64,000 bases of DNA from Bugula neritina (lineage: Eukaryota; Animalia; Bryozoa): the NCBI GenBank assembly GCA_964035545.1, contig OZ037767.1:28846628-28910627 (forward strand), read 5' to 3'. The notes below the pieces were generated by a model that was not told the origin of the DNA, ran no database searches, and worked only from the letters and a program-made list of their open reading frames with translations. Both the position numbers and the translations under genes were made by a program. Shown here piece after piece: positions 1 to 21,602 of this stretch (position 1 is its first letter; each line of letters begins with the position of its first letter).

Positions 1-1126
1 CTTAAGCTATTTTGCTTTCAGTATATACTTATAGTAATATTAATATGCATAATACTGTATCAGTATGACTATGAGTGTATGTCAAACTTGATAAATTTAT
101 CAATATGGATATCCATATGACTTCATAATAATATTTATAATTATTATAATTGTTGATAGCTTAAATAAATATTATCATTATGATTATGGGCATTGCTTAT
201 AGCACAAAAATAGCAGCTCAGTCCCATGCCTATACTCAAACCTTTCATTATCATACTTAGAAGGATGTTGCTTGACTGAACTGTGAATAATTTGGTCATT
301 TAATTATTGTCGTATGGTCATTGCATTTTGAGTTTATTCATTGTTATTTTAAAGAATTCAAGTCTATAAAATTTACTGGTGATAATTCCTATAAGTTTTA
401 GCTTCAATCTGTTTTACCCCTTTTGTTAGTTTTTGGTTATTAGAAAATATGCAGTTAGTTGAAATATTAAACTTGAATAGCATGGTTTTATACCATCATT
501 TTTACTTCAGTTAAATGTTGAGTTGGGAACAATTCTCAGAAAATTTCTCAGAAAAAAATTTGCCCACAAAAAACTGTTTACATAGTTGACTAAAAGCTTT
601 TTCTTAAAAATAAAATTATTACAAATAATTGTAAAACCTTACATAAAATGAATCGATGTGTTTCATTGAAAGTTATAAAGGATATATCGATTTCACAGCA
701 TTGAAACATTCAAGGCAACTCTCTTTTTACTGTCATTGTTGGCAGGATTTTAAAAGATGCACATAAAACAAAATATTCAATTTCTTTTGAAAATGTTTAG
801 GAAAAGATGCATTAAAATTTTTTATCAGCTGAACAACTTCTTCATTTTTGAGCACTAAGTAAAAGTATGTATTTTCCATTTGGAATTTATTTCATTGCAT
901 TGCATTCTTTAGCAGCCAACCTTTTCATTCCACTCATTCTTCAAAAAGACAATGCCAATGTGCAATATACAATATTTTTAATAGAATCAGTGATGGAAAT
1001 TTGTCTTTGCAGAATTTAAACCATTTAAAGAATTTCCATATGCATTCTCAAATTTTGGCAATGATAATAATTAATGTGTTATAAGTATTAGTAGCATCTG
1101 CCACATTTGATATATTTTAGAGAATA

Positions 1127-4100
1127 ATGCCACGAAAAAAGGCAGCCAGTGAAGCGGGTTCTGAACCTTCAACACAGCCAGTTAAAAAGTTCAAGCCAAA
1201 CCCAGAAGAGAATAGCAAAATGGAATCCAGTACCCGCCGTTCCCTTCGTACTCGTTCCTATGACGAGAATAATGTAGGAAACCAACCAGCCGCTCAGTCT
1301 AAGAAAGTTGCTGAGGTTAGTAGGCGTGACTCTGTAGTCTGCTGGTAATGCCTGTGCTGAATGTTGGTATGTAGAAATAAGCCGTTTTATTGGTTTTCAA
1401 GGCTGCCCTAAATCAACCAAGACGCAACGTTCTACAGGCTGCAGAAGCAAAGCCTGCTACAAGAGGCTCGGGATTTGTTGTGAAAAATCCGAGTGAAAAG
1501 AACTCGTGCCCTCTCGAGCTCTCCGTTCAAGTGACTCCGTGTGATATTCTAGAAAGACAACCAGCACTGCGTATGTGTTTCTACTATATTTATTCTAACA
1601 TTATATTTCTAAATATATTGCCTTCTCTTTATTTCAGTATTTGATTTATAACATTCTCACCTAAATTTCAGCATCAAGTAAAGAATCTGCATCCCGTAAA
1701 AGAAAGGTGAAAATATCACCAAAGTCTATTGAAAAAAGAACAAAATTAAGTGTAAGATTCCTATGATATAATTTCCTTTATCCTGACAGTATAATTTCTC
1801 ATTTTTACTATGTTATAATTTACTGTATATTTTGTTATATTTTGTTATATTTTCATTATTAGAACAGGTTTACGGTTTTGCTTACAGTTTCAGCTTATGT
1901 TTCCTTAAAACTCAAATGACCTTGACATATAACCCTTATTGTAGCCAACAGGAAGTCCAACGTCTTTGCTGGGGGAATTCCAAACAGTTCCATATTCAAA
2001 GAAGCATTCAGGAGACATGAGTAGCGGTGAGAACAGCGTACACTCTACAGATGCTACTCACACAGATGTCGTTGATGCCGATGTGTTGGACAATCTTAAA
2101 ACTAAATACGAAGCTGCAATATCACAACATAGAGTCAGCGGTCACTCAAGTCTTGCTGGACTGCCTGAGCAGCTGCCGGCGCTCAGCGCTGACCCTCTGT
2201 TCACTCGTCCAGCGGTTAAGTTGCACAAAGTTGATGTTAAGGTGAGACATCATGTTATGAAGTTCTAGTTGGTGACTCGTCATGTGAAACGTATTTAGAT
2301 TTTAGTAACGTGTCAAATATCTGTCCTGGATTTGTATTACTAACTCTTGTGGGTTTATAGTCACTATCTCTGCTGGAAATGGTTTTTTTAAAGCAGGATA
2401 AGGTTTTTTCTGATGTGGCACAGGAGCAATTATGGTTGGATGCTCTTCTTAACATCACTGCCGGTGTTTGTAGTCGAACTACTGACCTCGTGTTTACTAG
2501 ACCAGCACTCTGACCACCACACCACGACTGCTCCCTCTGGATTTGGATTATATATATTCTACTATATTCATTCTATTACTTGTTGCTTATTGAATTCTAA
2601 AGTGGTCACTCATGTTCTAGGTTGGAGCCAGTGTCTCTGTGATGACCTACAATATTCTCGCAGACTGTCACCTTCAAGCCTACAACTCCCAATACAGTTA
2701 CACAAGCGATGCACATCTTAGTTTAGACTTTAGGGGTTATAGAATTATCGAAGAGATCAAGCACTTAGACTGTGACGTTGTGTGCTTACAGGAAGTTGAC
2801 GATTTCTTCTATGAGAAAAGTTTAAGACCAGCTATGAAAATGTATGTGCAGTACACACCTATTAGCTTATCATATGTTATTCGCGTGATTATCCAGTGTC
2901 TTGGGTCTCACGTGGTTAGTTATTGTGTTGTAGGCTGGGCTATGAAGGAGTGTTTTACAGACGGAAAGGGGGTGGTTACCCTGAAGGAGCGTCCACTTTC
3001 TACAGAAGTAGCACGTACACATTAGACAGCCAACACGCCTGCTCATATGCTCAACTGGCTGACCAGGTAAGTTTACATAAACAATGTGTAAGCTGTCGTA
3101 GACTACAGTACTTGTCTCTAATGGAACCTGGTGGATATAGTAGTTGGTGTTAAAACAAACTTTTGTTAATTTGAGTTGTCTTCTCATGCAACCTGTTGGC
3201 CTTTATAAATTTGTGTTGGATTTGTTTTACACATTTGGGATCGTGATGGCTTAAATGCATATGCAGTCTCATGGTGTTAAATGCAATTAAGTTTTTTTAA
3301 ATTTTAAAACAACTTCAGTGTCAGTTCGAGGAGAAAAATATTTTCTTGTAAACTGTATAAAATATTGTAATATTTTTTAACGCAGAGCAATGGAGTTAGT
3401 TTTTAATGTCATCATGATGACAGTTGCTTTACTGTATACTAGTTTGTCTCTACCCAGCTGTCTGTTGGAATTCATGCAGTGCACAGTGTTTAGGGAAGTT
3501 TCGCTGCTGTTACAGGATATAGATAGGTCAGAACATTCAGAGGAAACCAAGCAGCTGCTAAGGCAGCACGTGAATAAGGAAGCTGTCTTACTCACATGTA
3601 AACTACGACACAAACCTACAGACAAACTTGTAGTTATAGGAAACACTCACCTCACGTGGACCAAGTTCACTGCTTTAGACATATCTTGTATGCAGGTACG
3701 GATATCATCACTCAATAATATAACCTCCATAAACTCTATCTTTACTAAAAATAAGTTCCTGCTATTGCTTGTTATGTAGAAGATTAAAGTTATGTTTGCT
3801 CTCTATTCGTTAGACAACAGGTCATATTTGTGTGAGTGTTTTGTAGCTACTAATGCATGCTGCCTTACATTCAGGCTCTGTCTGTTCAGTATGTTATGAA
3901 TATTTTATAATAAGTGAGAGTTGTCATTTCTGTTAACATTTAATGACTGTAACCACTTTCGGTAGTTCACACGTATATTGCAAGTGTAAGCACATTATCC
4001 ACACATCACCATGTATATTGTAGATGTACCATATTGCATATTATCCATATATAATGTATGTCGGTGTTAATTTGAGGTTTTCATTGTTGCTCACGAATTT

Positions 4101-5174
4101 TACCAGCTCTACTGGAGCAATTTCAACCGCTGTTCCATTAAAATAACATTAATACTTTCAACAGATGTGTTATGCATTCAAAGAAATGGACAGGCTATCA
4201 GAGCACGGTGAAATACCGATGGTGTTGGCAGGAGATTTTAACACTAGGAATTCGGATCCAGGATATCAGCTAGCCTTAGAGGGATATCTAAATGATGCTA
4301 GTCTAAAAACGTAAGTAGATTTTCATACCATAAGCATGTTGGTCTCATTTGATGGCAAGTAGAGGTTGTATTGTATGTTCAGTAGGTGATTATTAATTGT
4401 GTATTTTGATGTTTGGCTCTCACTAATTAAAGAATTAGCTAATCAGTTGAAAAATTTAAAGCTAATCTTAATAAAACTGAAACCTCCAGGCATGAGAGGA
4501 ACAAACTTTACTGCTAAAAACTAGCGTTGTGAATGAACTCAATTTTTTGTTGCAGATTACAGCAACTTAGAACAGTAACATATGCGGATGGAACAGAAAA
4601 GGCTCTCGTAGATCTTCTGTGGTGCGCTTTTCAACATCCGGCAAGGAACATTGCTTCTTCTTACTCTACTATAATGGTACGTTGATGACTATTTCAAAAC
4701 TCTGCCTATATGTACGAGTAGTGTTTTAGCTACTCGCACACTTTTTGTACAATGCCAGGTAATTTATCCTAAACAAATAGCTAGAGTATCTGCACTGTCA
4801 ATATGCAGAGCAAAGGCAAGTCAAGTTTAGCATTCGCCCTCCAAGGCTTCATGGTTGATTATAACACAGCCTGCCAGTTTGGCATTACAAGAGGTTAAAC
4901 AAAGTCTATTTGGCACAGTATTGCATTGATTTTTCAGTTTCATAATTTAGTGCATTATTAGATATTAAATCACAAAATGTCTTTTCTTCCTCTTCAGGGC
5001 AAAGAACCAGCAAAGACTAGCATTAACTTTGTAATGAACAGTGCAGTAGATTATATGTGGTCCAACAACATCCAGCCTCTGTCAGTAACTCAAACTAATA
5101 GCATATGCCACAAAATGCCAAACATTATATTCCCAAGTGATCACCTCAGCCTGCAGACAACATACGGCTTTTAG
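1127..5174 (+). CDS. EEP-superfamily deadenylase/phosphodiesterase (CCR4/Nocturnin/Angel/PDE12 group), 10 coding exons, ~570 aa with a basic low-complexity N-terminus
   Basis: Exons 1127-1315, 1402-1570, 1672-1751, 1945-2241, 2621-2841, 2934-3066, 3516-3695, 4165-4310, 4556-4676, 4998-5174 join in frame with GT-AG introns. EEP motifs in order: MTYNILAD, CLQEVD, GNTHL, LAGDFN, VDYMW, FPSDH. Subfamily cannot be resolved by eye. Confidence 0.88.
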
Positions 5175-5595
5175 CTTCTAGCTTGGCATACGAATGCGAA
5201 GGGTACTCACTAGTTTGTAGTCAATTTTAAACCTTTCTGTTCTCTTTGTTTTAAATGTATTGTTATTGCATCTAATTATATTCAAATTTGATATTTTGTA
5301 AAAAAAAATACACAAATTTATGAACAGAATTTTAATAAAACTATTATTATTCCAAGATGTAATTAAATGCTAAAAAACTGTGCACAGTATAGCAATATAG
5401 TATTTATAACAAACAGGTTATTTTTAAGAATAACTTTGGAATGAAACTAAAAATTTATCGGGTTGAGTGTTGAAATACAAAACAATATAATGCACTATAA
5501 AAGTAAATGTGATTGCACTAGACAGAGATTAGTCTATATACAACATGTACACCTTTGTACACTACAAATATGTACATAGCATCCATCATATGAAA

Positions 5596-8500
5596 TCATG
5601 GGGACTGTTCTTTTGACTTGAGTAAAGCCTTATGCTTCTTGCTCTGGTATTCCTGAGAGCTAGAGGGGGTGTCACTGGGGCGCTTGTTCCTTTTTGTGAC
5701 TGTCACTTTCATGGAACACCTTGTGAACTACAAATGAGAAAAGTGACCTTTTAGGCATTATATCCTCTCTTAGAGCTACTAACCAGCTATACCGCTAGTT
5801 ATATGGTATACACGGTATACACTGCCTACTTTTCGAGTCTCTGAAATAACAGAAACAAAATAAGAACGGAGACAAAACAGAACACAATGAAAGAAGTCTT
5901 GCGCGTTGCTGTTTTTGTTCAATCCATAGCAAAGATGAACAGCCTAGAGACTCGCCATAACCAAGCTCTTTTCATACTACAAAGGTTAAATAGTTACTGC
6001 TGCAGTCATACACCCAGTACGTATAGAAATTGTAATGAAAAAATAAAAACCTCAAACAGTCCAGGCTGAAATGCTCCAGAACCAAGGCTAACGAGTGATG
6101 GTTGAGACTGAGACAGTCGTTCCGACCCTTGGGAACTGACTGGAGAATCTTGACTATTGGATAGAGTGACCGTCTCCGAACATTGGTTGGTGCAAGCACC
6201 TTGGCGATAGCTTTTCAACGCGTTTAAGATTCTGGTGATAGTAGGCTTGGTCAGATTCATATTTTCCATGTCCTACAAGTATGTATTATGTAATGAAGTT
6301 CACTATGGCATAGGGAGGATAACTACAGATAAATATAGAGTTGTAACGAGATAACTCTATACTTAACCTGAATAATGGCTAATTGTCATACACAAGACAT
6401 TAACCACAGAAACCTGTTTTTCACGATTAAAATGACATTAGGAAAAGCATACATATGATAGACAATGAAATTTAACCTTTTAAGATTAACAGAAAATATA
6501 CCTTGACCGTAAAACTTTCTTGAGAGACGAGTTGAGCCATTGAGTGTAAGCCTGCCATTTGAAAATTGTCAATGTACGCACCCAGACCGAGTTTTTGAAG
6601 CCATCTACAGATAAAATTCATTGGACTATAAATTTTAGTTACATTTTACGTGTTAAGAACATACTAATTACATTTAATCTGTATTGTAAAAGTCACTATT
6701 TGTGGTAATGAGAAATATACAAATGATGAGGCACAACATACTCAGCTACACTATCTGTCCTCGATGCATCATCAGTCATATCATAGCCCCTACCAGCACC
6801 AGCCTGCCTCATATTGAACGAATCAGGAGCAGAGGAGAAGTTGAAAGCAGACGCCATATTGGGAAGCCCAGGCTGAACGCCTGCATAGCCCTGTGGAGCC
6901 GCACTGCAAGAGAAAACATAAAATGTGAGACGATGCACTCCGTAGTGTCTCCTCCCCGCCTCAACTCATCGGCTCCTTGCCAAAACAGACTACCAGTAGC
7001 TAACTTACAGATTAATCAGTAGTTAAGCCGCAGATTAAGTAAATGTAGTATACAAGAGAACAAAATAGAGCTAACTGATAGAACAGGTATTTACAACTAC
7101 AGTAAGCAATTTAGACGATGAGTTAAGGCTTCGTGGGAGTACAGCAAACCTGGTGACCGATTGAGCCTAAGACATCACTTGTGAAATCGAGCAGAATCCT
7201 GAACGCCGCGTGAAGCAGTAGAACGGGTGTGGCAGCGCTGATTGCGCGACGTCAGTCATTTTCTGCTTGACCGAGACTGTTACAGCAAACAGAATCCTGA
7301 CTGAATACGGAGGCCTACAGTCCAGCGCTGCAGTCAATCATTTCCTGTTGCCATGGCTACGCACTTCTGCTGCCATAACACGCCCCCAACTCAGTAATTT
7401 ATAGACCCATGCCTATTTAGTAATTTTAGTCATGTCCTCATTCAAGCTATACACAGATACATTGCCTCACGTTAAACTGTTGTTGTATAGTAATCCAATG
7501 GGCATGCTATGGCAGCTAGAAGTGTGTGGGCAACAGAGAGGCACAGAAACCTTAACACAGCCAAAGTTGAAGGTCATAAAACCCCTTCTAATAGGCTGAT
7601 AGTGGCTCCTGGTCGACCTTACGATCTGACCTAATATTGCCTCGTGCAAGGTCACCCTAGTCTCGTCACATACACCCTGCTACGTGAACACGAGAAAGAG
7701 TTTATCATACCTGTTGACTTCCTGCAAGCTACTAGAAATTTGACTAAAACCTGTCACGTTGTCAATGCATGAATGGTGAGCAATGAGTAAATAGGGAACT
7801 GCTTTTTATACTTTAATCTGCTATTAAGTTGCGCTGCATAACATAGAAAATATGAAAATAAAATAAAATGACTAATTATTTGGTAACATAATAAAAACAG
7901 CATATGCAGTGTAGTTGTGGTTGTTAGTTATTTACTGGGAGGGATTATAGTGAGTGGATGCAAATGCCAGCTATGAGGGGAAACTTCCAATGTTCAGAGT
8001 ATCTACCATGACTGCATATAGCTGTTAGTATGAAAATAGTTAAAATTTAGTTATTGTTCGGTAAAACTACTTAAATTAAAACTTGGGTTCCTTGTTGGCT
8101 CAGCCAACAACACAACACAATACTGAGTTGGCATACTGAGTATGAATAATGTGTAATTACTGGAATTCTAATTATTGCAGACTAGAGTGGAGTTGTCTAA
8201 TTTTAGAAAGATGACTAATGCTGCCGGCCCCGTCCAGGCGATTGTTGTCGCTATCGGAGTGCACGAGCAGACAGGCTATTCACTCGAAACCAGTTGAGTC
8301 AGCTGATACTTCCATAATATCACTAAAACATGGAGGCAGAATGAGTTTCAGTAGCGACTCAAACTTGGTCACGAATGATTTCACCAGAATTTTAATTAAA
8401 CTTTTATAAGTTCATATTTGTTTTAAACCAGATACAAAATAACTGTATTTAAAGACTAAGAATTAACCAGCAGCTAATTCAAGAATTTGATTTTCAAGCC

Positions 8501-11500
8501 AAAAATATTTATTCCATTCCCTGTTGCAATGCATGCATTATAGTTACTATATTGTGGATTATGCAGCCATAACACACTACCACTAGTACTTGTAACCGAC
8601 AGATATTACTTCACAGGAAGCCCCCAACAACTTATTGAAAGTCTGATGTAGGTTCATAGCTAGTTAGATCTAACACGTCTCAAGTCTAATGCAATGCGTA
8701 AAGGAATATTTAGCACACATTTCTCAACTAAATGAGAGCAGATAACTACAAGACTATCAACATAGGTGAGGGCAATAATTCTGCTAGAATTACACAATAT
8801 TCATTACATAAATACTAATAAATGTCTACATCTAATGGTGAACCAGCCATAAGCAAAGCCAAGTTCTGTAAGGTTCCTATAACAGGATCTAAAGCAGATG
8901 GTAGTCCACCATGGGAAGCACAGCATGGGAAACATAGCATTAGTGTTAATGCGTAACATTGGCTTCACTCAACTTATTTTACACGAAGTAAACTACACTT
9001 GAATTTTACATGAATCTACAGGACATGGCAAGTCAAGTCAATTAATATTTCCACAGCAACAATCACAGGATTTTCAATAATCAGGTAAAAACGATAATGG
9101 ATTAATTTCTGAACTGAAAAGCTCTTGGCAGTTAACACATACTCATTGCGAGGTCGCTGGTTAAACCTAGAGGATGTTTCAAGGGCATCTCTCAGCATGG
9201 CCAACACCTCGTAATTCCGTCGTCCTTTCACTTTCAGGGTGAAGGTTTCTTCCCTTGACTCGTCCCGAGGGCCTCTCATAATGCCATACATTGTTTGCTC
9301 GTGCACTGCTATAAAATAGACACGAAAATAAACACAGTGCTGTCACTCAGTGTCAGGTTCTCTCAACTCTCAAATATATACACCAGCTCAACTTAAACTG
9401 CTCATGTCATAGCAATAGACTTCGGAATAGAGTAAAAACTTTGTACAGATGAAAAAAATTAACCTGAATTCACATGTAGCCCGAGTTCTACATCAATTGC
9501 CTGAGGTACTCTCTCATAGATAGCCCTAGGAACTAGAAGATAGCCCTAGGAACTAGCAGACAATTCTAGGTACTAGAAGATAGCCCTAGGTACTAGAAGA
9601 TAGCCCTAGGAACTAGCAGATAGCCTTAGGAACTAGAAGTTAGCCCTAGGAACTAGAAGATAGCCCTAGGTACCCACCAACTTGAGAAGCAGGCTGCTGT
9701 GGTGGTGATGTATTGACAGACGTGTGTGAAGTAGATGGTCTATTAATAGAAGTAGTTTTGTGAGAAGGCGTTGTTTCGTTACGTTTCTGCCGCTGCAACT
9801 CTATTTTACCCTCTTCAGATTTCCGGTCTCTCCCCGGACAGGCACATATTCTGAGATCAATTGAAAGCCTGCCAAGCACCTCTTGATTCGAACTAAAATC
9901 ATATTTACTATTTTAAGAGCATCTTTTAAAAATTTCAATTATAAACTTTAAGTAAGGCTTCCCTTACTTGTATTAAATGGCAAACATACCACAAAGAAAC
10001 CTTGCATGCCTGTTTTATAGCGGAGAAACCACATAACACCCCCAATACTTACTTCTCTAGAGTGCAGACAACTCCCACTACTTACTTCTCCAGAGTGTAG
10101 ATAATAGACATCTCTCGCCGATTTGGACCTCCGACACAAGAGTTGAGACATTTGAAGGAGAAAAGGTAAGTCACCCAGGAGGTGCCGGCAGGGGGCGCGT
10201 CGTAGGGAGCAATCACGGCACACCGCCCGGTGCTCGAGTCCGTTACGTAACGGGCACCCTGGTTCTCACACCATATGAAGTGCTCTCTGTGGGGGATATT
10301 TGCTGTAAATACAACAGTTTGGCTGAAATCTATAACAATAATAATTTTCACACAAAAGTCCAACGTGTAACTGCATATAGCAGTTAGAATGAGAAATAAA
10401 AATTACACAGCAATCAGCTGGAACTATCAGATTTATACTGAATGGGCACCAAAACTCAAGTTCCAAATTAAAGAAATTAATCTATCCAGAAAATTTATGT
10501 GACATTTCACAAAATTGTAATATAAAAATGGAATATTTGACTGTCTACAAGCTGGTTAACAGAGACAGTGAATGATGTATATCCAACATACCACTTTCTG
10601 GAGCTTGAATGTGATTGGGGCACCTCTTCACCACGTCCTGCACATGCTCTGGTCTGCTGTAGATGGGCAGAGCGCGGATGTAGAGACCGTTAGCCACGCC
10701 GTCACAGTCTATACGGAACCTTACAGGGCACATGGCGTCTTTCTGAGCGTACAGCTTATTGGTCATATCTGAGAACTACAGAGCAATGTGTACTGGTGAA
10801 TATACAGAACACTGTGTACTGGTGAATATACAGAACACTGTGTACTGGTGAATATACAGAGCATCTGGCAGTGGTATGTTGTTCTAGAAGTACCCCAAGC
10901 TACATAGTACACCACTAGTTACTGAATGTAATCTTTCCAACCGCATACAGCCATTAGTGATGTGAGGAGAGGTGTCTGTCTATTCACAAATACAACTTAA
11001 CTTCTGTAGTACATGAGAAAATAAGGCACTCTTACTTATACACCCAACTCACTAGCTAACAGACTTTGTACTCTTAAAGTTTGGTGAGCTGTGTTGTGTA
11101 CTGTTGTGTATTGAAACTGTCTACTTGTCTACAATAAACTTACTGTCCAGGCTGTAGATTTGGTGTCTTTAGGCTGCTTTCCAAACTCAAACTGGAAGTT
11201 GTATGACCCTGGAAAGGGTTGACTGAAACACAAAATAACATAGCTCAATTTACGTGCTGCCATTATTTATTAACTCACTATGAGGCAGCACTTTATGAAG
11301 AAAATTTGTGAATGTCATTAAAATCTTCTGCCGCAAAATTTTAAAAAGATCAACTGTAAACATGTTCAAGCAATTTAGCAGCTTTACATGCTAATGGTGT
11401 GAGAAGTACCTGGATGGAATCAAAGACATGGGACTAGGGCTAAGGGAAGCCTGAGGCCTGCAGTAAACATTAGTTCCGGAATCGGGATAACTCCGCCCAT

Positions 11501-14500
11501 GGTCATCCTGTCCAAAGCTATTGAACTGCAAAACAAAGAAAAGTGTGTTAGTCAATTCTAAGAAGAGAAAACACAAATAAACAGAAGTCTACTCACTCTC
11601 TGGAGTATGGCTGTTCATGGAAATATTCTCTTTGATATAAGAGTAATGATAGAAAGTAGTTCCAGAACTTTGTTCCGTCCGATTTTACATAGTATTAAAC
11701 ATGTATTACATTATATGACATATAGCATATTATAGGACATGTATTATATTATATGACATATAGCATATTATATGACATATAGCATATTATAGGACATGTA
11801 TTACATTATATGACATATAGCATATTATAGGACATGTATTATATTATATGACATATAGCATATTATATGACATATAGCATATTATAGGACATGTATTACA
11901 TTATATGACATATAGCATATTATATGACATATAGTATATTATAGGACATGTATTACATTATATGACATATAGCATATTATAGGACATGTATTACATTATA
12001 TGACATATAGCATATTATAGGACATGTATTATATTATAGGACATATAGTATATTATATGACATGTAATATATTATATGACATGTAGTATATTATATGACA
12101 TATAGTATATTATATGACATGTAGTATATTATATGACATATAGTATATTATATGACATGTATTATATTATAGGACATATAGTATATTATATGACATGCAG
12201 TATATTATAGGACATATAGTATATTATATGACATGTAGTATATTATAGGACATGTAGTATATTATAGAACATGTAGTATATTATATGACATGTAGTATAT
12301 TATAGGACATGTAGTATATTATAGAACATGTAGTATATTATAGGACATGTAGCATATTAGACACACACAGCACGGGCAGCAGTTCACATTGACACTGGAA
12401 TGAACAGGTTACACCATGAAACACATGATTCGCACAAAAAAACTACATAAAAGAGTTCAAATGATGACATATAAAAGGCATGTATTAGTGAACTACACTA
12501 AAACAAACAGTACCTAAACATTTTGTTAATAACACAATATAGTGTTGAAAATTGGAGTTGCTCTTTCAATGAACATAATCTGTTCTATTGAATTGTTAAG
12601 TTGATAAATCTCTTCACAATTGATGTAGAAGCTTAACACCTATACTTCTTAGAGAATGAAAATATTGCACAACAGCTGCTATTCAAAGATTATGGGTAAT
12701 AAATTAAATATTATTTCACACAACATTTTAGAGAAAACTAGTTTGGGCCATCACTGTCAGAAAGAGGGGGGGGGGGCGAGTTCAACCCCGCCAGATGCTT
12801 GAAATAGTCTTACAATTTATTTAAACAACAGCTAACATCAACTGAAGAATAAGACACATGAAACATGAGAAAATAAACACACCCTGTCTATAATTAGAAA
12901 AGTACGGTGCACATACATAAAGCACACAGCACAACGTAGTATGAGAGAAGTGGTGTGAGAACACAATCCAGACACATACCCCATTAGTAGTTGACTCAGG
13001 TATAGCACCATTCCCATCCGATACACCTGGTTTGCACATGTTCAAATTAGATATTGAAGGAATTTTGAAAAAATAAAAAATCGATTTAAAATATATAAAC
13101 TATTTGTTGAAATAAATAGAAAATAAATAAACTATTCTAAAATATACCGAGTATTGAAAAAGCACCAACGTATGTCTGACTACCAACGAAGACAAATTTG
13201 AAATGACACCGGGCTAAACATATTAATCTAGAATGTAGTCAATCAAAGTATCATGCAATCAGCGCAGGCACGTTGCTCAAACATGCCCAAACATGTCATA
13301 TGCACAAACTATGTGACTAAACTCAACATGCCGTGTTCAAACTTGCCCAACCAATCAGATGCCGCTTTCAACGAGCATTGCATATTTCAGATCAATGAGG
13401 TCATCAATCGAGCCATTCTATTGGCTAACAAATAAAACTTGCCTGAACAAGTTTTCAATACCAAAGGAAGTAATGGCCAAGCAATAACCGAATGGCCTCA
13501 TCTTCAAAAACACATCCATCTAAATAATGGCGATTTTCAATAGCTACATGTCTATACAACAATGTCACCTATTAGCAGTTTTCATAAACCTATCAAAAGC
13601 TGTACAGAAGCAAAGCTACAGCTAAATAATAGACCATAGTGGTGAAAAGAAGACAGTTTCAGATAGTTGTAGGCTCCAGTTTTGTTCACATGGTCTGGTT
13701 ATAAACTTTACAGCTAGTATTTATAGTTGATAGGTGAAAAGCTTATATTTCAACTAAAAAACTTGTTAAAAAAATACATCCTGTATCACTGTAGTTTTGT
13801 GGTACTGTAGTACTGTATCATTGTTGTAATGTAGTGTTGTGGTACTGTAGTACTGTATTACTATAGTGTTGTGGTACTGTAGTACTGTATTACTGTATCA
13901 CTGTAGTGTTGTGGTACTGTAGTACTGTAGTACTGTATTACTGTATCACTGTAGTGTTGTGGTACTGTTGTACTGTATTATTAGAAAAGCACACAGCAGC
14001 CTAAGCAAGGCGCACAAAACTTTCTCATATTAACAGAAAACAATGCAGTAGGGAGACGACCAGAGGTCCAGTAATGCAAGACAGCAAAAGTTATGATTTG
14101 TGAGAATTCATTTAGACATGTAAAAAGCTTAGGATGTGAAAATTTTTCTGCTTTTGCACGCAAATATTATAGTATAATTCATATATAATATAAATAACAA
14201 GTGATATTATACACAACTTAAAATTTTTATTTAACTTGTGATGAAAATTGATGTGTGTATGATATGTGATTGTAACTCAAGTAACTTGCATTTTCACAGC
14301 CTATAAATTAATGTTATAGTTTTGTTCAAATAAAATCAATATTATGATTATAGCTACAGTTAAAGATGAGCCCGAGCAAAATTTTCCTGTACAGTCTGAA
14401 TACATGACATCTAGGAGATCAAATTTCCTAGCAACAACAAGAAACAAACGTTTAGAAAAAAGTTGATGTTAGCTGAGATAAACAGAGAGAAGCTGCATTT

Positions 14501-17500
14501 CAAAGACAGCACAATGTTGGATGAAAACATATTCTCTTTGTCTTACTTACTGTTTACAGGCAAGCAAGGTGCATTATGGAATAGAGAAATGAATATTGAA
14601 TATACCAAAGTTCAACAACCTTTTATTTAAAGAAAGATAAAGGAAACCCCGCATTGTAGTCCAACTTATGGTGATTAGTCAGGAACTGAATAAATACTTT
14701 AACTAAATACAAAGGCAGGGGAACTATAGAAATGGAGCTATAAAGAAAGGAAAAACAAATCAATCCTTTTAACTAGCACGAACTAGTTATAATATTGACA
14801 CTAATTTCTAATCTTTTGAAACATTATGAAAAGCTTCAACAGAGATATTGTAACTATTTTCACTTTATAAAATTGCATGGATGGAATGAACTCCGAAAAT
14901 AAAACATACAACTCAAAGACAAGCACATATATTCCATACAGCAAAATATTATTACAGTAAACCTTGCTACATTCTCATGTAACTTATGACTAGTTAATAC
15001 TATTATAAATGGCAAAGGTAAGCATGGTAACTCCATCATAGTGATAGAGTAGTAATTACACTAACACATAATATATTGCAGTTAGTAGTACTACATTTGC
15101 TAGTTATCAATATTTTCTATAATCATTACAAAGTAAATTATAACAGGAGAAGCAGAAAACCAGAGTATAACTGAGTGTTGCAGCAAACCCAATGATATTC
15201 ACGAAGGCAACTGATATATCTTTATATCTCTACACTTATCACATGTAAAAATAAATAACAAACAGAAAGATAACTAATAGTAATAGTAATACTATTTAGT
15301 TACTATGATAGAGAGTCAGAGTGATTTTTTAAGCATTACCATGACTGAATCAGATGATCCATGAGTAACAGAAAGCCTAACTGATTGAAACAAAATGAAT
15401 ATTACTACTACTACTACTAGTACTGCTACTACTAGTACTATAAGTATATATACGTATATACTTATAGTATTAGTATATTGTGTTGATCCATTTTAAAAGT
15501 TGTGGAAACTTACTTTGAATTTCTGTTCAGAATCAGGATGAGGAGGTGAAACTGAATCAAAAGTCAAACTGGTGACATTTTCTTCAGAGAGTGGAGTGTG
15601 AGAATCAAAGTGATAAAACGGTGAGTTATCAAAATCCAACACGTAAGTCATATTGAAAATACTAGTAATCACAAGTTACTAACAAAGCAAGTTGAGAAAG
15701 AAGTAGTACATAGAAGTAAATATTCAAGCCTAAGCACTAGAGGCGGATCTGAGATAGATCTATCCAACCATAAAAGACTAGATGAATAAACATGCCCAAC
15801 AAGTTGACTCATCATTGTATATCGGTTAGCATTACACACGTGGTTATTAGCGCTAAGCTCCGCCCAGCCGACCAATCATCACTGATGAATCAAATCAGTT
15901 ACACTCATTCTATACTCCACGGGTGAAAGATAGTAATGAGTCATTGTCAAGTCTAGACATGTTTACTGTTAAAATGGCAGATATTGCCGCCATTAGCAAT
16001 ATAAAAAGAAATTTTATAGGAAGTAAAGCATTTAATGCCAGTTGTAAAGAAAGGAAGGCCGAACATAATACATTATATCAATATGAAAAACTCAGTTGCT
16101 AATAGCATTATGTTGCACAGATTGCTACTGCGAAAAACTGCAAAGCATGACTTAACTTTATAATTTAGTACAGCAATGACATGCACCAACACCAAATTAT
16201 AACTAACAAAAGTTTAAGCTTTCTCGTGTAAATTTTCAAGTGAATAAAATAAAATGGCAATCATATAATATTGCTATCGCATGCATCCAATTCTGCAATG
16301 GCACAAAATGATTAGCCTTTGAAGTACAAGAGCCAACTATTGGCTATAAGTATGGATCCACAAAAGTCATGCTAAGACTGGAGCTACGGGCTTCCCACAT
16401 TCAACTCAAAAAGTGTAGTTTTAAAAAAAACTTGTGAAATTTCAGCCACTTTAGAGGTAAGAAACAAGATGCAAACAAAAACAAGAAAAAACTAGCTGAT
16501 TTCACTGCACAAATTTACAAGAATCCACCAAAGAGCAGCTCTGGAAGCTATTCAGTAACCATACATATTACAGTAACTACACATATTACAACAACTATAC
16601 ATATATATTACAGCAACTATACATATATTTTACACCAACTATACATATATTTTACACCAACTATGCATATAAATTACAGCAACTACACGTATGTTGCTAT
16701 AACTATACATATATTACAGTAACTATACATATATACTATAGTAACTATGTATATATTATAGTAACTATGTATATATTACAGTAAATATGCATATATTACA
16801 GCACTAGGGGTTCTTACAGGGCTTGAGAATTAAGTATATTGACTGCAGTGTTTCAGAAACAAACTTAATGCTATGTCAAGTATCGGATATATCAAATTCA
16901 GATGTCAGGGAGGAGAATTACGTAGCTCACCTGTGCTAGCATCTGTTGCTGTGATTGTATGAGCAATGATTGAGGTAGAATTTGTCTAGGGACCGTGGTG
17001 TTTAGCGACAATTCACATTTGGTAACCTCGTTGCCATCAGAGCTTTCAAATGTGTAGATTTCAGGGCTTTCAATAATTTTGGTGAATCTAAAAGGAGCAT
17101 TTATATTGAAAAACAATGCGATTAAAGTAAACTTAGCTTTGACTACAACTTAAAGGTAGCTAAAACTTTCAAATGTTGAAAATGTGTGAAAGAAGTCAGT
17201 GGTCGATTTAACAATTGCTGGTAAGCATGCTGCAAACGAGTTATAAGATATTACACCCTTACAGAACTAATTTCCCCACAGCATAGTGATGAGTTCTAAC
17301 ACAATACCGGCAAAGATGGATACTGTGAGAAACGGTGAGAAATGGTCATCAGTTCTAAACTTTAGTTCAAGTTGGAAACTTGAAACTAGGTTTATTTTAG
17401 TATGAAGAGAAATATCTTTTTAAATACCATGATTATAATTAGGTTTTTGAAACATTTTGCTGTTATAAAAACTTGCAGCAATATAGTGAGGAAACAGAGA

Positions 17501-19940
17501 CAGTCTAATTTATAACAAATATAGCCAAGTTTTCAAAATCAAAACTTCATTTCTAACCAAAACTGCAACCTTCAAATAGCTTGTAGAATCGTGGAAAACG
17601 GCATCAACTGAAACTAATGTGTTATTTACCATATTTAATAGTTTGCCTTGGAAACCAATGCATACACTATACACTTGTGGCTCTACTCAGATTGACACAA
17701 TTGAAACTATGCTAGTTGTGGATATTAAAAACATTATTTTAAATTTTTCTACTTTTTAATACTATATTACCTGCAAGAAAATGAACAATTCAATGTTTTA
17801 GTTTTAATATTATATTACTAGTACACAGTATTCATTGGTGTTTTATAGATACCTTATAGAAAATGGTATGGTAAAGTTGATGATGTTAAACATAAAAAAA
17901 TGAAAAAAATAGCTGAATTTCTTTACATTAAACTGCTAATTTTACAAGTTTACTTTAATATACAGCAAAGCATGGATAGTAAATTTCAAGTAGTAAAAAG
18001 CAGCTAGAAACCGTAGATTGTTAGCTGTCTAGCACATTGCAGTCAGTATTAGGATTCTGTCTTCTCATTTGATCCGGAGTACATTTCTCAGATAGTGGTG
18101 ATGGAAGCTGCTTAGTTGCTTTTCCTGAGTGGCGTAGGATGTCCAAGTTTTGCTAGAATAGAGTAGTGTGAACAATACGCATGCTCTGTATACATGCATC
18201 TTGGTGTTTGCTTACATGATGCTATTAGCCCACAATTACTTAAGTCGCTTGGACATTACTGCGGAAGCATTGACAATCTTTGGGTTGATCTCAGGCTCAA
18301 GGGAAAAATTTGTGCTGATACACCAGATAGAGAAATCTGTCAACCGAGTTGAACTCCTGACTTTTTATACAGATGCTTAGATGTGAGTCAGGACTCAGTC
18401 TCACTACTTCAGTCTTTTTTATGCTGATAGTAAAAGATTATAAAGCCCGAGTAGTCACAAACAGAAGCCAGATGGTTGATTAGCTTTTGAAATGCTTTCT
18501 ATGTGTGTGTTGCTAGAGCGGCATTATCTAGGTGTTGGCTCATAATCTGGCAAGGTTGTACAGCCTATTGTCAGACATGGTGTGTAGGTAGACTCCATTT
18601 TTTTTGTTATGGAAGGCCTTGGCCAAGAACATTAAAAAGAAGATTCCAAAGAAGGTTAGGGCCAGTACGTAGCCCTCCTTGACCTGTCATTAAATCAGAT
18701 CTAATGTTGAATCATTGTAACTCATGTGTGCTGAGCATATCTGCATGAAAGAACATGATGATAGAGTGCAGCTTGGGGAGAGGAACAGCCAATATTTTTC
18801 AGGATTTAAATTAGACCACTTCTGCTGATGAGATCAAGTGACTTCTAGATTTATGAAGGTAAGGAAAAGTGGCTTGTTTTATTTTGTTACTGTCTCACAA
18901 AGAAGATCATGCCAGTGTCAGAACTCCATCACTGCGCAATTGATAAGAAAAAGTTTTATACTGACATTTTACACCATAATCATTTTTATTTACTAATAAT
19001 TTACTCCATTACCAGACTGATCTAACTTTTAGAGCAGTGTTACTGTTAGTTACTTAATAGTAACACTAATTATTTCAATCTTCAGTGTAGAATAAGACTA
19101 ACTCAAATTATGAATTTGTCTTCCTATTCAATTATTGTTGAGTAAAATTAATCAAATTTAAACGAATGATTATGATATTAATTCAAAATTTATCAAATTT
19201 ATATAGTAATAATACAATTATGAATTATATTCAATTTTATATCGTTTATAATTATTTTTAACAAACAACTTCATAAAACTAATACTTACGGTAATACTAA
19301 TCATAACTATACTAATAACTATACTAAGTCTAATGGCAATGCTAATTCTAATAGTAATTGTAATACTAATAGACTATTGGTAAATGTAGTAATAATACTA
19401 ATACTTAATAGTAATAACACTAATAGTATTATTACATTCTGATTTACTATTACTATTAGTATTGCTTAGTATTACTATTAGTATTAGTATTACTATTACT
19501 AATAGTAATACTAATACTAATAGTATTAGTATTGGTATTAGATTTCATTATGACTCATCGCTAATTAGTAATTACACTGATGAGTGATGACTATCTCTAT
19601 CACTGACTATAAGTTTGAGTAGTCACCTTTCACCGCCGTGACTATAAGTTTGAGTAAAACTAAAAATAAGATTAAATGTTATCAACTAAAAGCAAAAGTA
19701 AAACAAATTGAAATTGAAATTGAAAATTTGAAACATTTTTTATAACTTAAACTTAAGTAAAAGTGTGTAAATAAATGTCTTATAATGAATTTAAAATACT
19801 TACTCAACAGTTGAATCTTGTTTCAAAGAATCTAATAGTTGAGTATATGTTTCTTGGCTTAATATTCTCATAGATTCATCGCAGGATTCTGTTCCACTTC
19901 CAGCTCCAGCGCTCAAACTCAAGTTAAGAGCCATATTCAT
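5596..19940 (-). CDS. TP73: p53/p63/p73-family transcription factor, full-length TA-alpha-like isoform (TAD, DBD, oligomerisation domain, SAM, TID/HOMO), 12 coding exons, 629 aa
   Basis: Exons 19940-19804, 17087-16931, 11525-11410, 11222-11144, 10775-10592, 10302-10086, 9892-9678, 9308-9143, 6903-6742, 6604-6502, 6272-6051, 5727-5596 sum to 1890 nt in frame. Motifs: LSQETY (box I), TKSTAWT, VVKRCPNH, CLNSCVGGPNRR, LRICACPGRDR, FTLKVKGRRNYEVL (OD), SVAEWLQKLGLGAYIDNF (SAM), PGLFEFTRCSMK (TID/HOMO-like). The symbol marks a co-ortholog of TP53/TP63/TP73. Confidence 0.93.
8280..8322 (-). CDS. Candidate alternative terminal exon of the p53-family gene (SAM-less isoform ending ...DDIMEVSADSTGFE*)
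   Basis: Acceptor ctcattctgcctccatgttttag, phase 2 matching the OD exon end at 9143, 13 further codons then TGA; minus-strand ATTAAA at 7812-7817. Confidence 0.45.
9517..9672. repeat. 20-bp minisatellite (tagccctaggaactagaaga) starting right at an intron donor
   Basis: About 7 tandem copies visible. Confidence 0.9.
11698..12358. repeat. ~18-19-bp AT-rich minisatellite (gacatgtagtatattatat variants)
   Basis: Dozens of degenerate tandem copies. Confidence 0.92.
12980..13039 (-). CDS. Candidate alternative first coding exon (DeltaN isoform B: MCKPGVSDGNGAIPESTTNG) of the p53-family gene
   Basis: ATG at 13039, exactly 20 codons, donor GG|gtatgt, phase 0 matching the exon starting at 11525; 240-415 bp downstream of a p53RE/CCAAT cluster. 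Confidence 0.6.
13279..13454. promoter_or_regulatory. Intronic promoter with p53-family response elements and CCAAT boxes
   Basis: AAACATGCCC-AAACATGTCA at 13279-13298 (19/20 to RRRCWWGYYY x2); AAACTTGCCT-GAACAAGTTT at 13435-13454 (20/20, no spacer); half-site AAACTTGCCC 13339-13348; CCAAT 13351-13355; ATTGG 13420-13424. Confidence 0.8.
13780..13980. repeat. Degenerate gtactgta/gtagtgtt minisatellite
   Basis: Visible tandem units. Confidence 0.8.
15514..15651 (-). CDS. Candidate alternative first coding exon (DeltaN isoform A: MTYVLDFDNSPFYHF...EQKFK, 46 aa) of the p53-family gene
   Basis: ATG at 15651, 46 open codons ending exactly at an AAA|gtaagt donor, phase 0 matching the exon starting at 11525; promoter motifs directly upstream. 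Confidence 0.7.
15788..15964. promoter_or_regulatory. Second intronic promoter with p53-family response element
   Basis: TGTCAAGTCT-AGACATGTTT at 15945-15964 (18/20, both CWWG cores, no spacer); perfect half-site AAACATGCCC 15788-15797; GC-box-like ctccgccc and CCAAT 15872-15876. Confidence 0.62.
16560..16800. repeat. AT-rich minisatellite (acagtaactatacatatatt variants)
   Basis: Visible tandem units. Confidence 0.85.
18050..18700 (+). mobile_element. Heavily decayed non-LTR (RTE-like) retrotransposon remnant in intron 1 of the p53-family gene
   Basis: GC-richer block; ORF 18168-18380 reads LVFAYMMLLAH...IFGLIS...K, resembling the RTE RT motifs LLFADDxxLxAH and FGLxIS. Confidence 0.45.
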
Positions 19941-21602
19941 ATTAATATTGCTCTCTCATTAGAGAACTAAAAGTAAAAGCAAGCTATTGTTTTACTTGAG
20001 TAGATACAGTATATTCAGATTCTGCACAGATATAAGTATTGCTGTTAGCGTTATAATTATTGCTTTGCTCAGAATACCGCAGTGAGAACTAGAAGTCATG
20101 AATGAAATAACATGTTCTGCAAAACAATAATGATTGGCGAGCATGGACAAACTGTGTTAGGCGAAGGTCAGGAAATAGCCACCTATTATTTGGCGAAAAG
20201 AGTCGAACGTTGTAATTCAGGTAAATCCCGCCGTAGATATAGCACGCGGGTGTGTCTCTATAATAATAACAATAATAAGATAATACATAATTATTTTACT
20301 ACCATGCGTCTTTGGTTATCGCTATTATTGTATTATTGTGCTATTAGCTCCACGGTGATATATTTTCTTTGGAGTCATCTCCTATTTGATTGATGGCTAA
20401 TAAAATTTGCAAGCTTGACTCGCCAAATCTTGCTCAGCGTTCTGATACAATTTCACATAACTATTAATATTACCTTATAACATAGCTGATAGAAAGTAAA
20501 ATCGTTCACAGGCTACACAGCTCAGCTTTGGTTTTTTTAAATTTTCAAAACCCTGAAATTCACTTTTGACCTCAACTTTAATTAACTTAAGAGTGAGATT
20601 CAACGACGTGTTTGTTCTTCTGTCTATGTTTAATTCTATGACAATACAATTAATATAAATATAGGTCTCGATTTATTATCACCACTAATAGTATTACTGA
20701 TAGTTATATTTATACAACTTGAACTTTGAAGTTGAACTTGTACTTGACCTTGTACTTGTAGGACTACTACTACTAGTACTAGTACTAGTAGTAGTAGTTG
20801 TACTTCACTAAACTTGAACTTGAAGTAAAACCTTTAACTTTTAGTTTTGAATTTAAAGATTTGTTTTGATCATTAAGTTTTATGTTGATAAATAATAATT
20901 ATAAATAAAATTAGAAATTACTATTCGTGTTTCTCCTTTTTTCTGCTGTAAGACTTAAACTTAAAGTTGATTGCTCAGTGACTGAGTCTGGGGCTCAAGC
21001 TGAGTGAGCCTCACAGCTGATTTTATTTTTGGTACATAGTGATAGTAATACTAATAGTATTAGTACTAGTACTACTAGTAAAATGATCACTAGGCACTGA
21101 GTCTCTACTTTTAGTAGTTACAAGCATAATTTTAATTTTTATATCATTATCATTATGATATTCATACTCATGTACAACTGCAACGTTGCACATTTTTCAG
21201 TGAGCTAGACTTGGAAAGTTAGAGTTTTTAAATTAAATTTTGACAACAGCTTTTACGTAGTAAGCAGGCAACTTTTTTGTTTTATGCAGCTCACACTTGG
21301 CCAAAGAGCTGCTTGTTGATTTTGCCTTGCTGTTCATCTTAAATTTAGGAAATAATCATAATAGAATTAGAATACTCTAATTTGATGTGTTAATATTAAC
21401 TGATGTTTTGATATTCAATTCATTTTCATAATTAAAATTTATAGTACATTTTACTTAGTTTCATGTCACGATGGAAGTAATTTTATTTGTTGTAGAACTA
21501 TACATAGTATTCTTAAATTGAAGTAAGTTGCTGAGGTACTACATGCTGAACTACAGTTTTTATTCTATATTTATTTTAGCATCTCTTTGACATATCAATA
21601 TA

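Follow-up and report, generated by a model that had tools for sequence, protein, structure and literature searches.

A p53/p63/p73-family gene of the bryozoan Bugula neritina has at least one, and probably two, candidate alternative internal promoters in its second intron. Each would consist of a conserved block with putative binding sites for p53-family proteins, followed by a short ATG-initiated exon that could stand in for the N-terminal activation domain. The gene is carried by a window of 64 kb (the whole stretch of DNA analysed; G000:C3:28846628-28910627) in a genome of 216 Mb that is about 67% AT; positions below are those of the window, and the gene and its features are all on the minus strand. 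We regard the chances as evenly balanced that at least one of the two blocks is an internal promoter bearing p53 response elements (REs) and giving an N-terminally truncated (DeltaN) isoform. The fuller proposal, in which two such promoters both serve feedback, appears to us clearly more doubtful and is put forward tentatively.

Response elements and short exons in intron 2

Intron 2 (16930-11526, 5.4 kb) lies downstream of the exon with the transactivation domain (TAD) and of exon 2, and ends at the first common exon (11410..11525; FNSFGQ...LSPSPMSLIPS), which starts in phase 0 after the acceptor ttttgcag/TTC. It holds two mini-exons. Mini-exon A (15514..15651) is an ATG plus 45 codons (46 in total), reads MTYVLDFDNSPFYHFDS...EQKFK, and ends in phase 0 at the donor AAA/GTAAGT. 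Mini-exon B (12980..13039), an ATG plus 19 codons (20 in total), encodes MCKPGVSDGNGAIPESTTNG and ends in phase 0 at the donor GGG/GTATGT. Both have an open frame that would continue into the exon at 11525 (phase 0 to phase 0); when the coordinates were re-read, the two ATG-initiated exons, the good donors and the frame that the earlier note had described were all present. Under a lenient donor rule the intron offers seven ATG-to-donor candidates in phase 0, among which A and B have the best donors, and, going downstream from 13221, no ATG occurs for about 180 nt until that of B. Mini-exon A encodes a strongly acidic, hydrophobic peptide (8 D/E versus 2 K/R, rich in F/Y/L), and the N-terminus supplied by B is short (20 residues) and neutral. 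We take the unique peptides MCKPGV... and MTYVLDF... to have no obvious likeness to the vertebrate DeltaN peptides. An origin of mini-exon A as a duplicate of exon 2 was considered and ruled out (BLASTP E 3.8).

A p53 RE was defined as two RRRCWWGYYY decamers with a spacer of 0-13. The block preceding mini-exon B carries RE B1 (13435..13454; AAACTTGTTCAGGCAAGTTT, i.e. AAACTTGTTC AGGCAAGTTT), a perfect 20-mer without spacer, and RE B2 (13279..13298; TGACATGTTTGGGCATGTTT, i.e. TGACATGTTT GGGCATGTTT), which agrees with the consensus at 19 of 20 positions. The stretch 13339..13424 of the same block has a CCAAT box (13424-13420), an inverted CCAAT (13355-13351) and the perfect half-site GGGCAAGTTT (13348-13339). 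The perfect element, its 19/20 neighbour and the CCAAT boxes are thus where the earlier note had placed them. In block A, RE A1 (15945..15964; AAACATGTCT AGACTTGACA) matches at 18 of 20 positions with both CWWG cores intact and is situated 294 nt upstream of the ATG of A; closer to that exon, a perfect half-site GGGCATGTTT (15797-15788) abuts an out-of-register CAACTTGTT, the pair occupying 15788..15806. Promoter-type motifs are found over 15837..15943, namely TGACTCA (15943-15937), an inverted CCAAT (15876-15872), GGGCGG (15865-15860) and CACGTG (15842-15837); reading factors from consensus sequences, we take these to include an AP-1-type site, a GC box and an E-box.

B1 and B2 are the only REs with at most one mismatch in the 64 kb, for which shuffles predict 0.09. 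When two mismatches with intact cores are allowed, only A1 is added, and all three full REs of the window are inside intron 2. Perfect half-sites are similarly concentrated, 6 of the 14 in the window falling within 13279-15964 (2.7 kb; Poisson P about 2e-6). Whole-genome BLAST with 13200-13560 and with 15660-16000 returned matches of each region only to itself; both RE regions are single-copy, which rules out a repeat origin and removes the objection, anticipated in the earlier note, that the elements might belong to a widespread repeat. By these counts and searches the REs are non-random and not repeat-borne.

The ratio of observed to expected CpG is 0.1-0.4 across intron 2 and 1.26-1.30 at the TA (transactivating form) promoter (20050-20500). 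It has local peaks over 13000-13450 in region B (0.6-1.05) and over 15550-16000 in region A (0.55-0.68), a profile that is the pattern expected of unmethylated regulatory DNA within a methylated gene body.

Conservation in a related lineage

Conservation was assessed in one related lineage, at about 10% intron divergence, through two contigs that are both unspliced and colinear with the genomic DNA and were recovered via gene-caller open reading frames (ORFs) predicted on them. The first, L009 (JGI metagenome), aligns to 17058-15122 and includes the mini-exon A ORF at 98% identity; the second, L010 (Logan SRR4020080), aligns to 13820-12326. This alignment, suggested in the earlier note, found in that lineage both units of RE block and mini-exon conserved beyond their flanks.

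In region A, identity rises from 87.2% in the upstream intron (16360-16010) to 96.9% in the promoter-like block (16009-15652) and 97.8% in mini-exon A (15651-15514; two synonymous changes, one V-to-M change and no indel), and falls to 60% in the downstream intron (15483-15380). Block, mini-exon and donor together form a conserved island (15484..16009) of 96.9-97.8% identity. In region B, the upstream intron (13820-13530) is 77.5% identical, the RE/CCAAT block (13529-13250) 96.8% and its continuation into the putative 5' untranslated region (UTR; 13249-13110) 97.9%; an AT-rich stretch of 70 nt (13109-13040) drops to 84%, mini-exon B (13039-12980) is identical at 60 of 60 positions with its donor kept, and the downstream intron (12949-12326) shows 87-92%. 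The second island (12950..13529) accordingly comprises the RE/CCAAT block, putative 5' UTR, mini-exon B and donor, at 96.8-100% apart from the AT-rich 70 nt. On substitutions alone, the contrast between island and flanks has a Fisher P of 2e-5 in region B and 1.4e-6 in region A. Exon 2 is only 89.8% identical to L009 over 128 nt, with 13 changes, several of them non-synonymous; this TA-specific exon is evidently evolving fast and, because a real coding exon is so much less conserved, no other sequence in this part of the gene is as constrained as the islands.

The relative keeps all RE decamers and CCAAT boxes as they are, except for a T-to-C change in RE A1 that is still within the consensus, and all four promoter motifs of block A and the half-site pair at 15788..15806 are identical in L009. 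Two neighbouring decamers even gain intact CWWG cores in L010: the decamer next to the half-site 13348-13339 acquires an intact CAAG core, and a further half-site matching at 9 of 10 positions appears 3 nt downstream of RE B2. Non-coding RNA was ruled out as the cause of island conservation, as no Rfam family matched within the islands; the only Rfam matches were sub-threshold and fell in minisatellites.

The gene and its relatives in the genome

Pfam and reading of the sequence identify TAD-like, DNA-binding, tetramerisation and SAM exons of a p53/p63/p73-family gene; Pfam and protein searches were done exon by exon, and for the codon divided between exons 1 and 2 a single base was joined on by script. 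Exon 1 of the TA form (19804..19940), delimited by sequence reading, starts with the ATG at 19940 and ends in phase 2 at the donor GA/GTAAGT; it had no Pfam match. The exon includes SQETYTQLL, and its TAD-like activation box (19824-19862), SQETYTQLLDSL, presents YxxLL where vertebrates have FxxLW, a similar but non-canonical motif. The TA-specific exon 2 (16931..17087) extends from the acceptor ccttttag/A to the donor CAG/GTGAGC and ends in phase 0.

The common exons that follow the one at 11525 span 6472..10766 and are supported by PF00870, PF07710 and PF00536 and by PDB alignments to p63/p73/p53 cores. The P53 DNA-binding domain is spread over three of them (10766-10590, about 10300-10085 and about 9880-9680; PF00870, E 4.5e-13, 6e-20 and 7.4e-6), the tetramerisation motif lies within 9306-9016 (PF07710, E 5.4e-9, above the cut-off) and the SAM domain occupies 6621-6472 (PF00536, 26.7 bits with a cut-off of 23; PF07647, 24.5 bits with a cut-off of 20.5). 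The closest PDB cores are p63/p73. The SCVGGxNRR and RxCACPGRDRK segments are present, and therefore the residues that read RRRCWWGYYY are kept: the DNA contacts S241, R248, R273, A276, C277 and R280 are retained and R283 is K, as in p63/p73. By its SAM domain the gene resembles the p63/p73-type (ancestral-type) subfamily, and the earlier note's recognition of a p53-family gene is borne out by the Pfam matches (P53, P53_tetramer, SAM).

The gene, which the same note calls a single ancestral-type gene, is not the only member of the family in the genome. A second, more divergent P53 DNA-binding-domain locus exists on the same chromosome-scale contig about 15.7 Mb away (C3:13178899-13179828, plus strand; 38 and 34.5 bits), with no full p53 RE in the surrounding 20 kb. 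Because of this locus, the REs of intron 2 could be served by either protein.

Proposed function of the two blocks

In the mechanism that we infer from the sequence, which takes in transcription starts, splicing, binding, induction and dominant-negative action, each candidate promoter would be a conserved block of about 350-500 bp combining general promoter motifs with p53-family REs. A short ATG-bearing first exon would follow each block and be spliced in frame to the exon at 11525, giving products that do not have the N-terminal activation domain of exons 1-2 and keep the DNA-binding, oligomerisation and SAM domains. The candidate promoters would be switched on by the TA form or by the paralogous p53-like protein; activation by the TA form is to be expected because the REs match the consensus of that protein's conserved contact residues.

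The predicted B product would compete for sites or form mixed tetramers, weakening the response in the manner of vertebrate DeltaNp73 and Delta133p53. The product of A, with its acidic N-terminus of 46 residues, may instead be an isoform with an alternative activation domain: mini-exon A may supply a substitute activation segment, in which case its product would not be simply a DeltaN repressor. The two-tier feedback circuit of the earlier note is the weakest part of the claim, because the A peptide could replace the lost activation segment. Of the two, B is the stronger candidate for a DeltaN promoter of the classical, self-induced type: it has both a perfect and a 19/20 RE, an exon without a single change in the relative, and the higher of the CpG peaks.

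Alternative explanations

Several observations weigh against these proposals. Upstream of mini-exon A are ATGs at 15793, 15771 and 15711, which a transcript would avoid only by starting no more than about 60 nt before the ATG of A. Among 1.84 billion representative proteins none starts with mini-exon A, the search having returned only a genomic read-through ORF of 59 aa and one low-complexity protein, and a protein search with the exon-3 ORF found nothing. Block A has the weaker REs: a single 18/20 site, and a perfect half-site whose partner is out of register. The genome-wide scan that the earlier note had called for found 232 perfect REs, mostly on a transposon family, against 5 for a reversed-pattern control; the note's figure of 0.002 perfect REs per 64 kb holds if only base composition is considered but is too low by this count, which gives about 0.07 per 64-kb window and 0.006 per 5.4-kb intron, about 30 times the earlier estimate. 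The evidence of conservation comes from one divergent lineage, and the pattern of two synonymous changes to one non-synonymous in mini-exon A is not significant. Lastly, the non-coding parts of the islands are conserved as highly as the mini-exons, so that conservation cannot separate 'promoter plus exon' from 'enhancer'.

This equal conservation of non-coding and 'coding' parts is what recommends the foremost alternative, which we nevertheless consider unlikely: the blocks would be intronic autoregulatory enhancers, bound by p53-family proteins and acting on the TA promoter or on a neighbouring gene, with no transcription start of their own and with coincidental mini-ORFs. Vertebrate TP63 indeed has an intronic enhancer bound by p63, and phase-0 ATG-to-donor candidates occur at about 1.3 per kb under the lenient rule, such that finding one downstream of any given block is not rare. 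An enhancer would not lead one to expect that mini-exon B and its donor are perfectly conserved when the adjoining 70 nt upstream are only 84% identical, that no other ATG precedes that of B for about 180 nt, or that both donors are near-consensus. The clusters of CCAAT, GC-box and E-box motifs and the CpG peaks are also promoter-like, and the intron before the first common exon is the position of the vertebrate P2 promoters.

It is less probable still that one or both internal promoters are real but not self-regulated, the RE-like sites being non-functional or bound by another factor or by the paralogue only, with no feedback through the gene's own TA product. The second P53-domain locus gives this some substance, as do the YxxLL form of the TAD motif in place of FxxLW and the abundance of p53-type motifs on mobile elements of this genome. 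The DNA-contact residues of the gene's own product are nonetheless conserved, the relative has kept each of the five perfect or near-perfect decamers in block B unaltered and has gained extra half-sites beside them, and the window has no full REs elsewhere.

Improbable in our view is a third possibility, that transcripts from the TA promoter include the mini-exons as internal exons by alternative splicing, the RE blocks being regulatory or splicing-neutral intron sequence. For A, the AG at 15663-15662 would give a 148-nt exon whose first base completes the phase 2 codon of exon 1; for B, the acceptor at 13101-13100 would give a 120-nt cassette, and both acceptor options are open in frame here. 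The pyrimidine tract of the A acceptor is weak (11/20), though, and the 120-nt version of B has an in-frame TAA in the relative and a poorly conserved 5' part. Internal splicing would also give no reason for the cluster of REs and CCAAT boxes and the CpG peaks that lie immediately upstream of the mini-exons.

Pure chance, with motifs and mini-ORFs fortuitous in an AT-rich intron and the conservation due to locally low mutation, draws on the single comparison lineage and on an empirical RE background above the composition prediction, but is very improbable given two observed REs versus 0.09 from shuffles, the half-site clustering, and two separate islands that surpass both their flanks and a real coding exon.

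Other p53-type sites and features of the locus

The perfect REs elsewhere in the genome were examined for their settings. Among the first 50 sites listed, about three quarters are GGGCAAGTCTGGGCAAGTCY. This 20-mer sits in a dispersed repeat at least 750 bp long, some 160 nt from one edge of the sequence common to the copies. Four copies (L003-L006: C1:6812205, C1:10599196, C2:1860891 and C2:5399588) were compared and are 91-100% identical. This suggests that p53-type sites are spread by transposons in this genome, as in mammals. Another arrangement, at C2:2067218-2067393 (L007), is a near-perfect palindrome of about 180 bp with three abutting perfect half-sites per arm, AAACTTGTCT AGGCATGTCT GGACATGCCT. 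At C1:20375133-20375152 (L024:4934-4953) an inverted CCAAT precedes a perfect GGGCATGTTTGGGCATGTTT, which is about 500 nt upstream of a bZIP_Maf-type ORF (L024:3731-4417, minus strand; domain E 9.8e-9). Its half-site GGGCATGTTT is the one used twice in intron 2 of the p53-family gene; the arrangement is no more than suggestive of a possible further target gene.

The 20-mer of RE B2, TGACATGTTTGGGCATGTTT, also occurs in a repeated element of an unrelated organism (metagenome Ga0126342 and OFFA01000090.1; L018-L023), where it is flanked by CATG half-site-like words and is not orthologous. A scan of metagenomes with this 19/20 20-mer for a third lineage returned only that unrelated repeat of another organism.

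Intron 2 also contains minisatellites at 11699-12359 (units of 19/38/95 nt), 13781-13980 (32-48 nt) and 16560-16803 (about 22 nt), the first of which starts at the corresponding point of contig L010 as well. In intron 1, the interval 18000-18700 has minus-strand ORF fragments that look like a decayed reverse transcriptase of a non-LTR retrotransposon, e.g. ...ACVLFTLLYSSKTWT.... On the plus strand, a tail-to-tail neighbour (1100-5200) has exon-like ORFs with motifs such as LAGDFNT that are reminiscent of an endonuclease/exonuclease/phosphatase-fold enzyme.

Comparison with known systems

The general design of a p53-responsive internal promoter is familiar from MDM2, whose P2 promoter has two adjacent REs in an early intron and closes a negative-feedback loop; the product there is an E3 ligase, unlike the truncated family member predicted here. 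To our knowledge, no invertebrate internal promoter has been shown to carry functional REs for its own gene. In vertebrates the gain of the p53/p73 response depends on truncated isoforms that the response itself induces, a loop that may be either ancestral or a vertebrate addition. We would go so far as to propose, with considerable reserve, that the loop by which TA forms induce DeltaN forms is not a vertebrate invention, and that a lophotrochozoan p63/p73-type gene has it in a doubled form, with an RE-driven repressor from B and a substitute acidic N-terminus from A, one gene thus encoding an activator, an alternative activator and a self-induced brake. If true, the feedback design would predate the protostome-deuterostome split, and the gene would be a natural example of two graded internal promoters. 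The locus offers a defined test case, with two junctions and three REs, in a fouling bryozoan that is open to sampling.

Internal-promoter isoforms are described among invertebrates in PMC5374463: in LvDeltaNp53 of Litopenaeus vannamei and in Drosophila Delta124p53, unique N-termini of 6 and 13 residues replace the TAD. Isoforms of p53-like mRNA have also been reported in mussel (Muttray 2008, as cited in PMC2900285). The shrimp and Drosophila genes share with the architecture predicted here the dual gene structure and the short unique N-terminal peptide in place of the TAD. The part of PMC5374463 that was searched makes no mention of p53 REs in the shrimp internal promoter or of its autoregulation, unlike our gene, in which the RE clusters are the main feature and the isoforms are predicted.

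Putative self-regulation is the point of likeness with human Delta133p53 and zebrafish Delta113p53, which are made from the P2 promoter in intron 4 of TP53 (Marcel 2010 and Aoubala 2010, as cited in PMC3191818), an internal promoter with REs for the gene's own full-length product. In these isoforms the DNA-binding domain is truncated as well, and no first exon adds a coding sequence of its own; here the domain would be retained whole.

The closest counterpart is the P2/DeltaNp73 loop of human TP73 (Grob et al. 2001, reviewed in PMC3191818). Induction of DeltaN forms from P2 promoters by the TA forms that they then inhibit is established there for p73 and p53, and both TP73 and the bryozoan gene are SAM-containing and of p63/p73 type. 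As in TP73, the candidate internal promoter is in the intron before the first common exon, has p53-family REs within a few hundred bp upstream, and is followed by a short unique ATG exon in frame; the predicted product likewise has no TAD and keeps the DNA-binding and oligomerisation domains. The bryozoan gene differs in having two candidate promoters instead of one and in its lophotrochozoan host. In position, frame and motif content the locus fits the known design. If real, its novelty would lie in the phylum, in the presence of REs in an invertebrate internal promoter and in the doubling.

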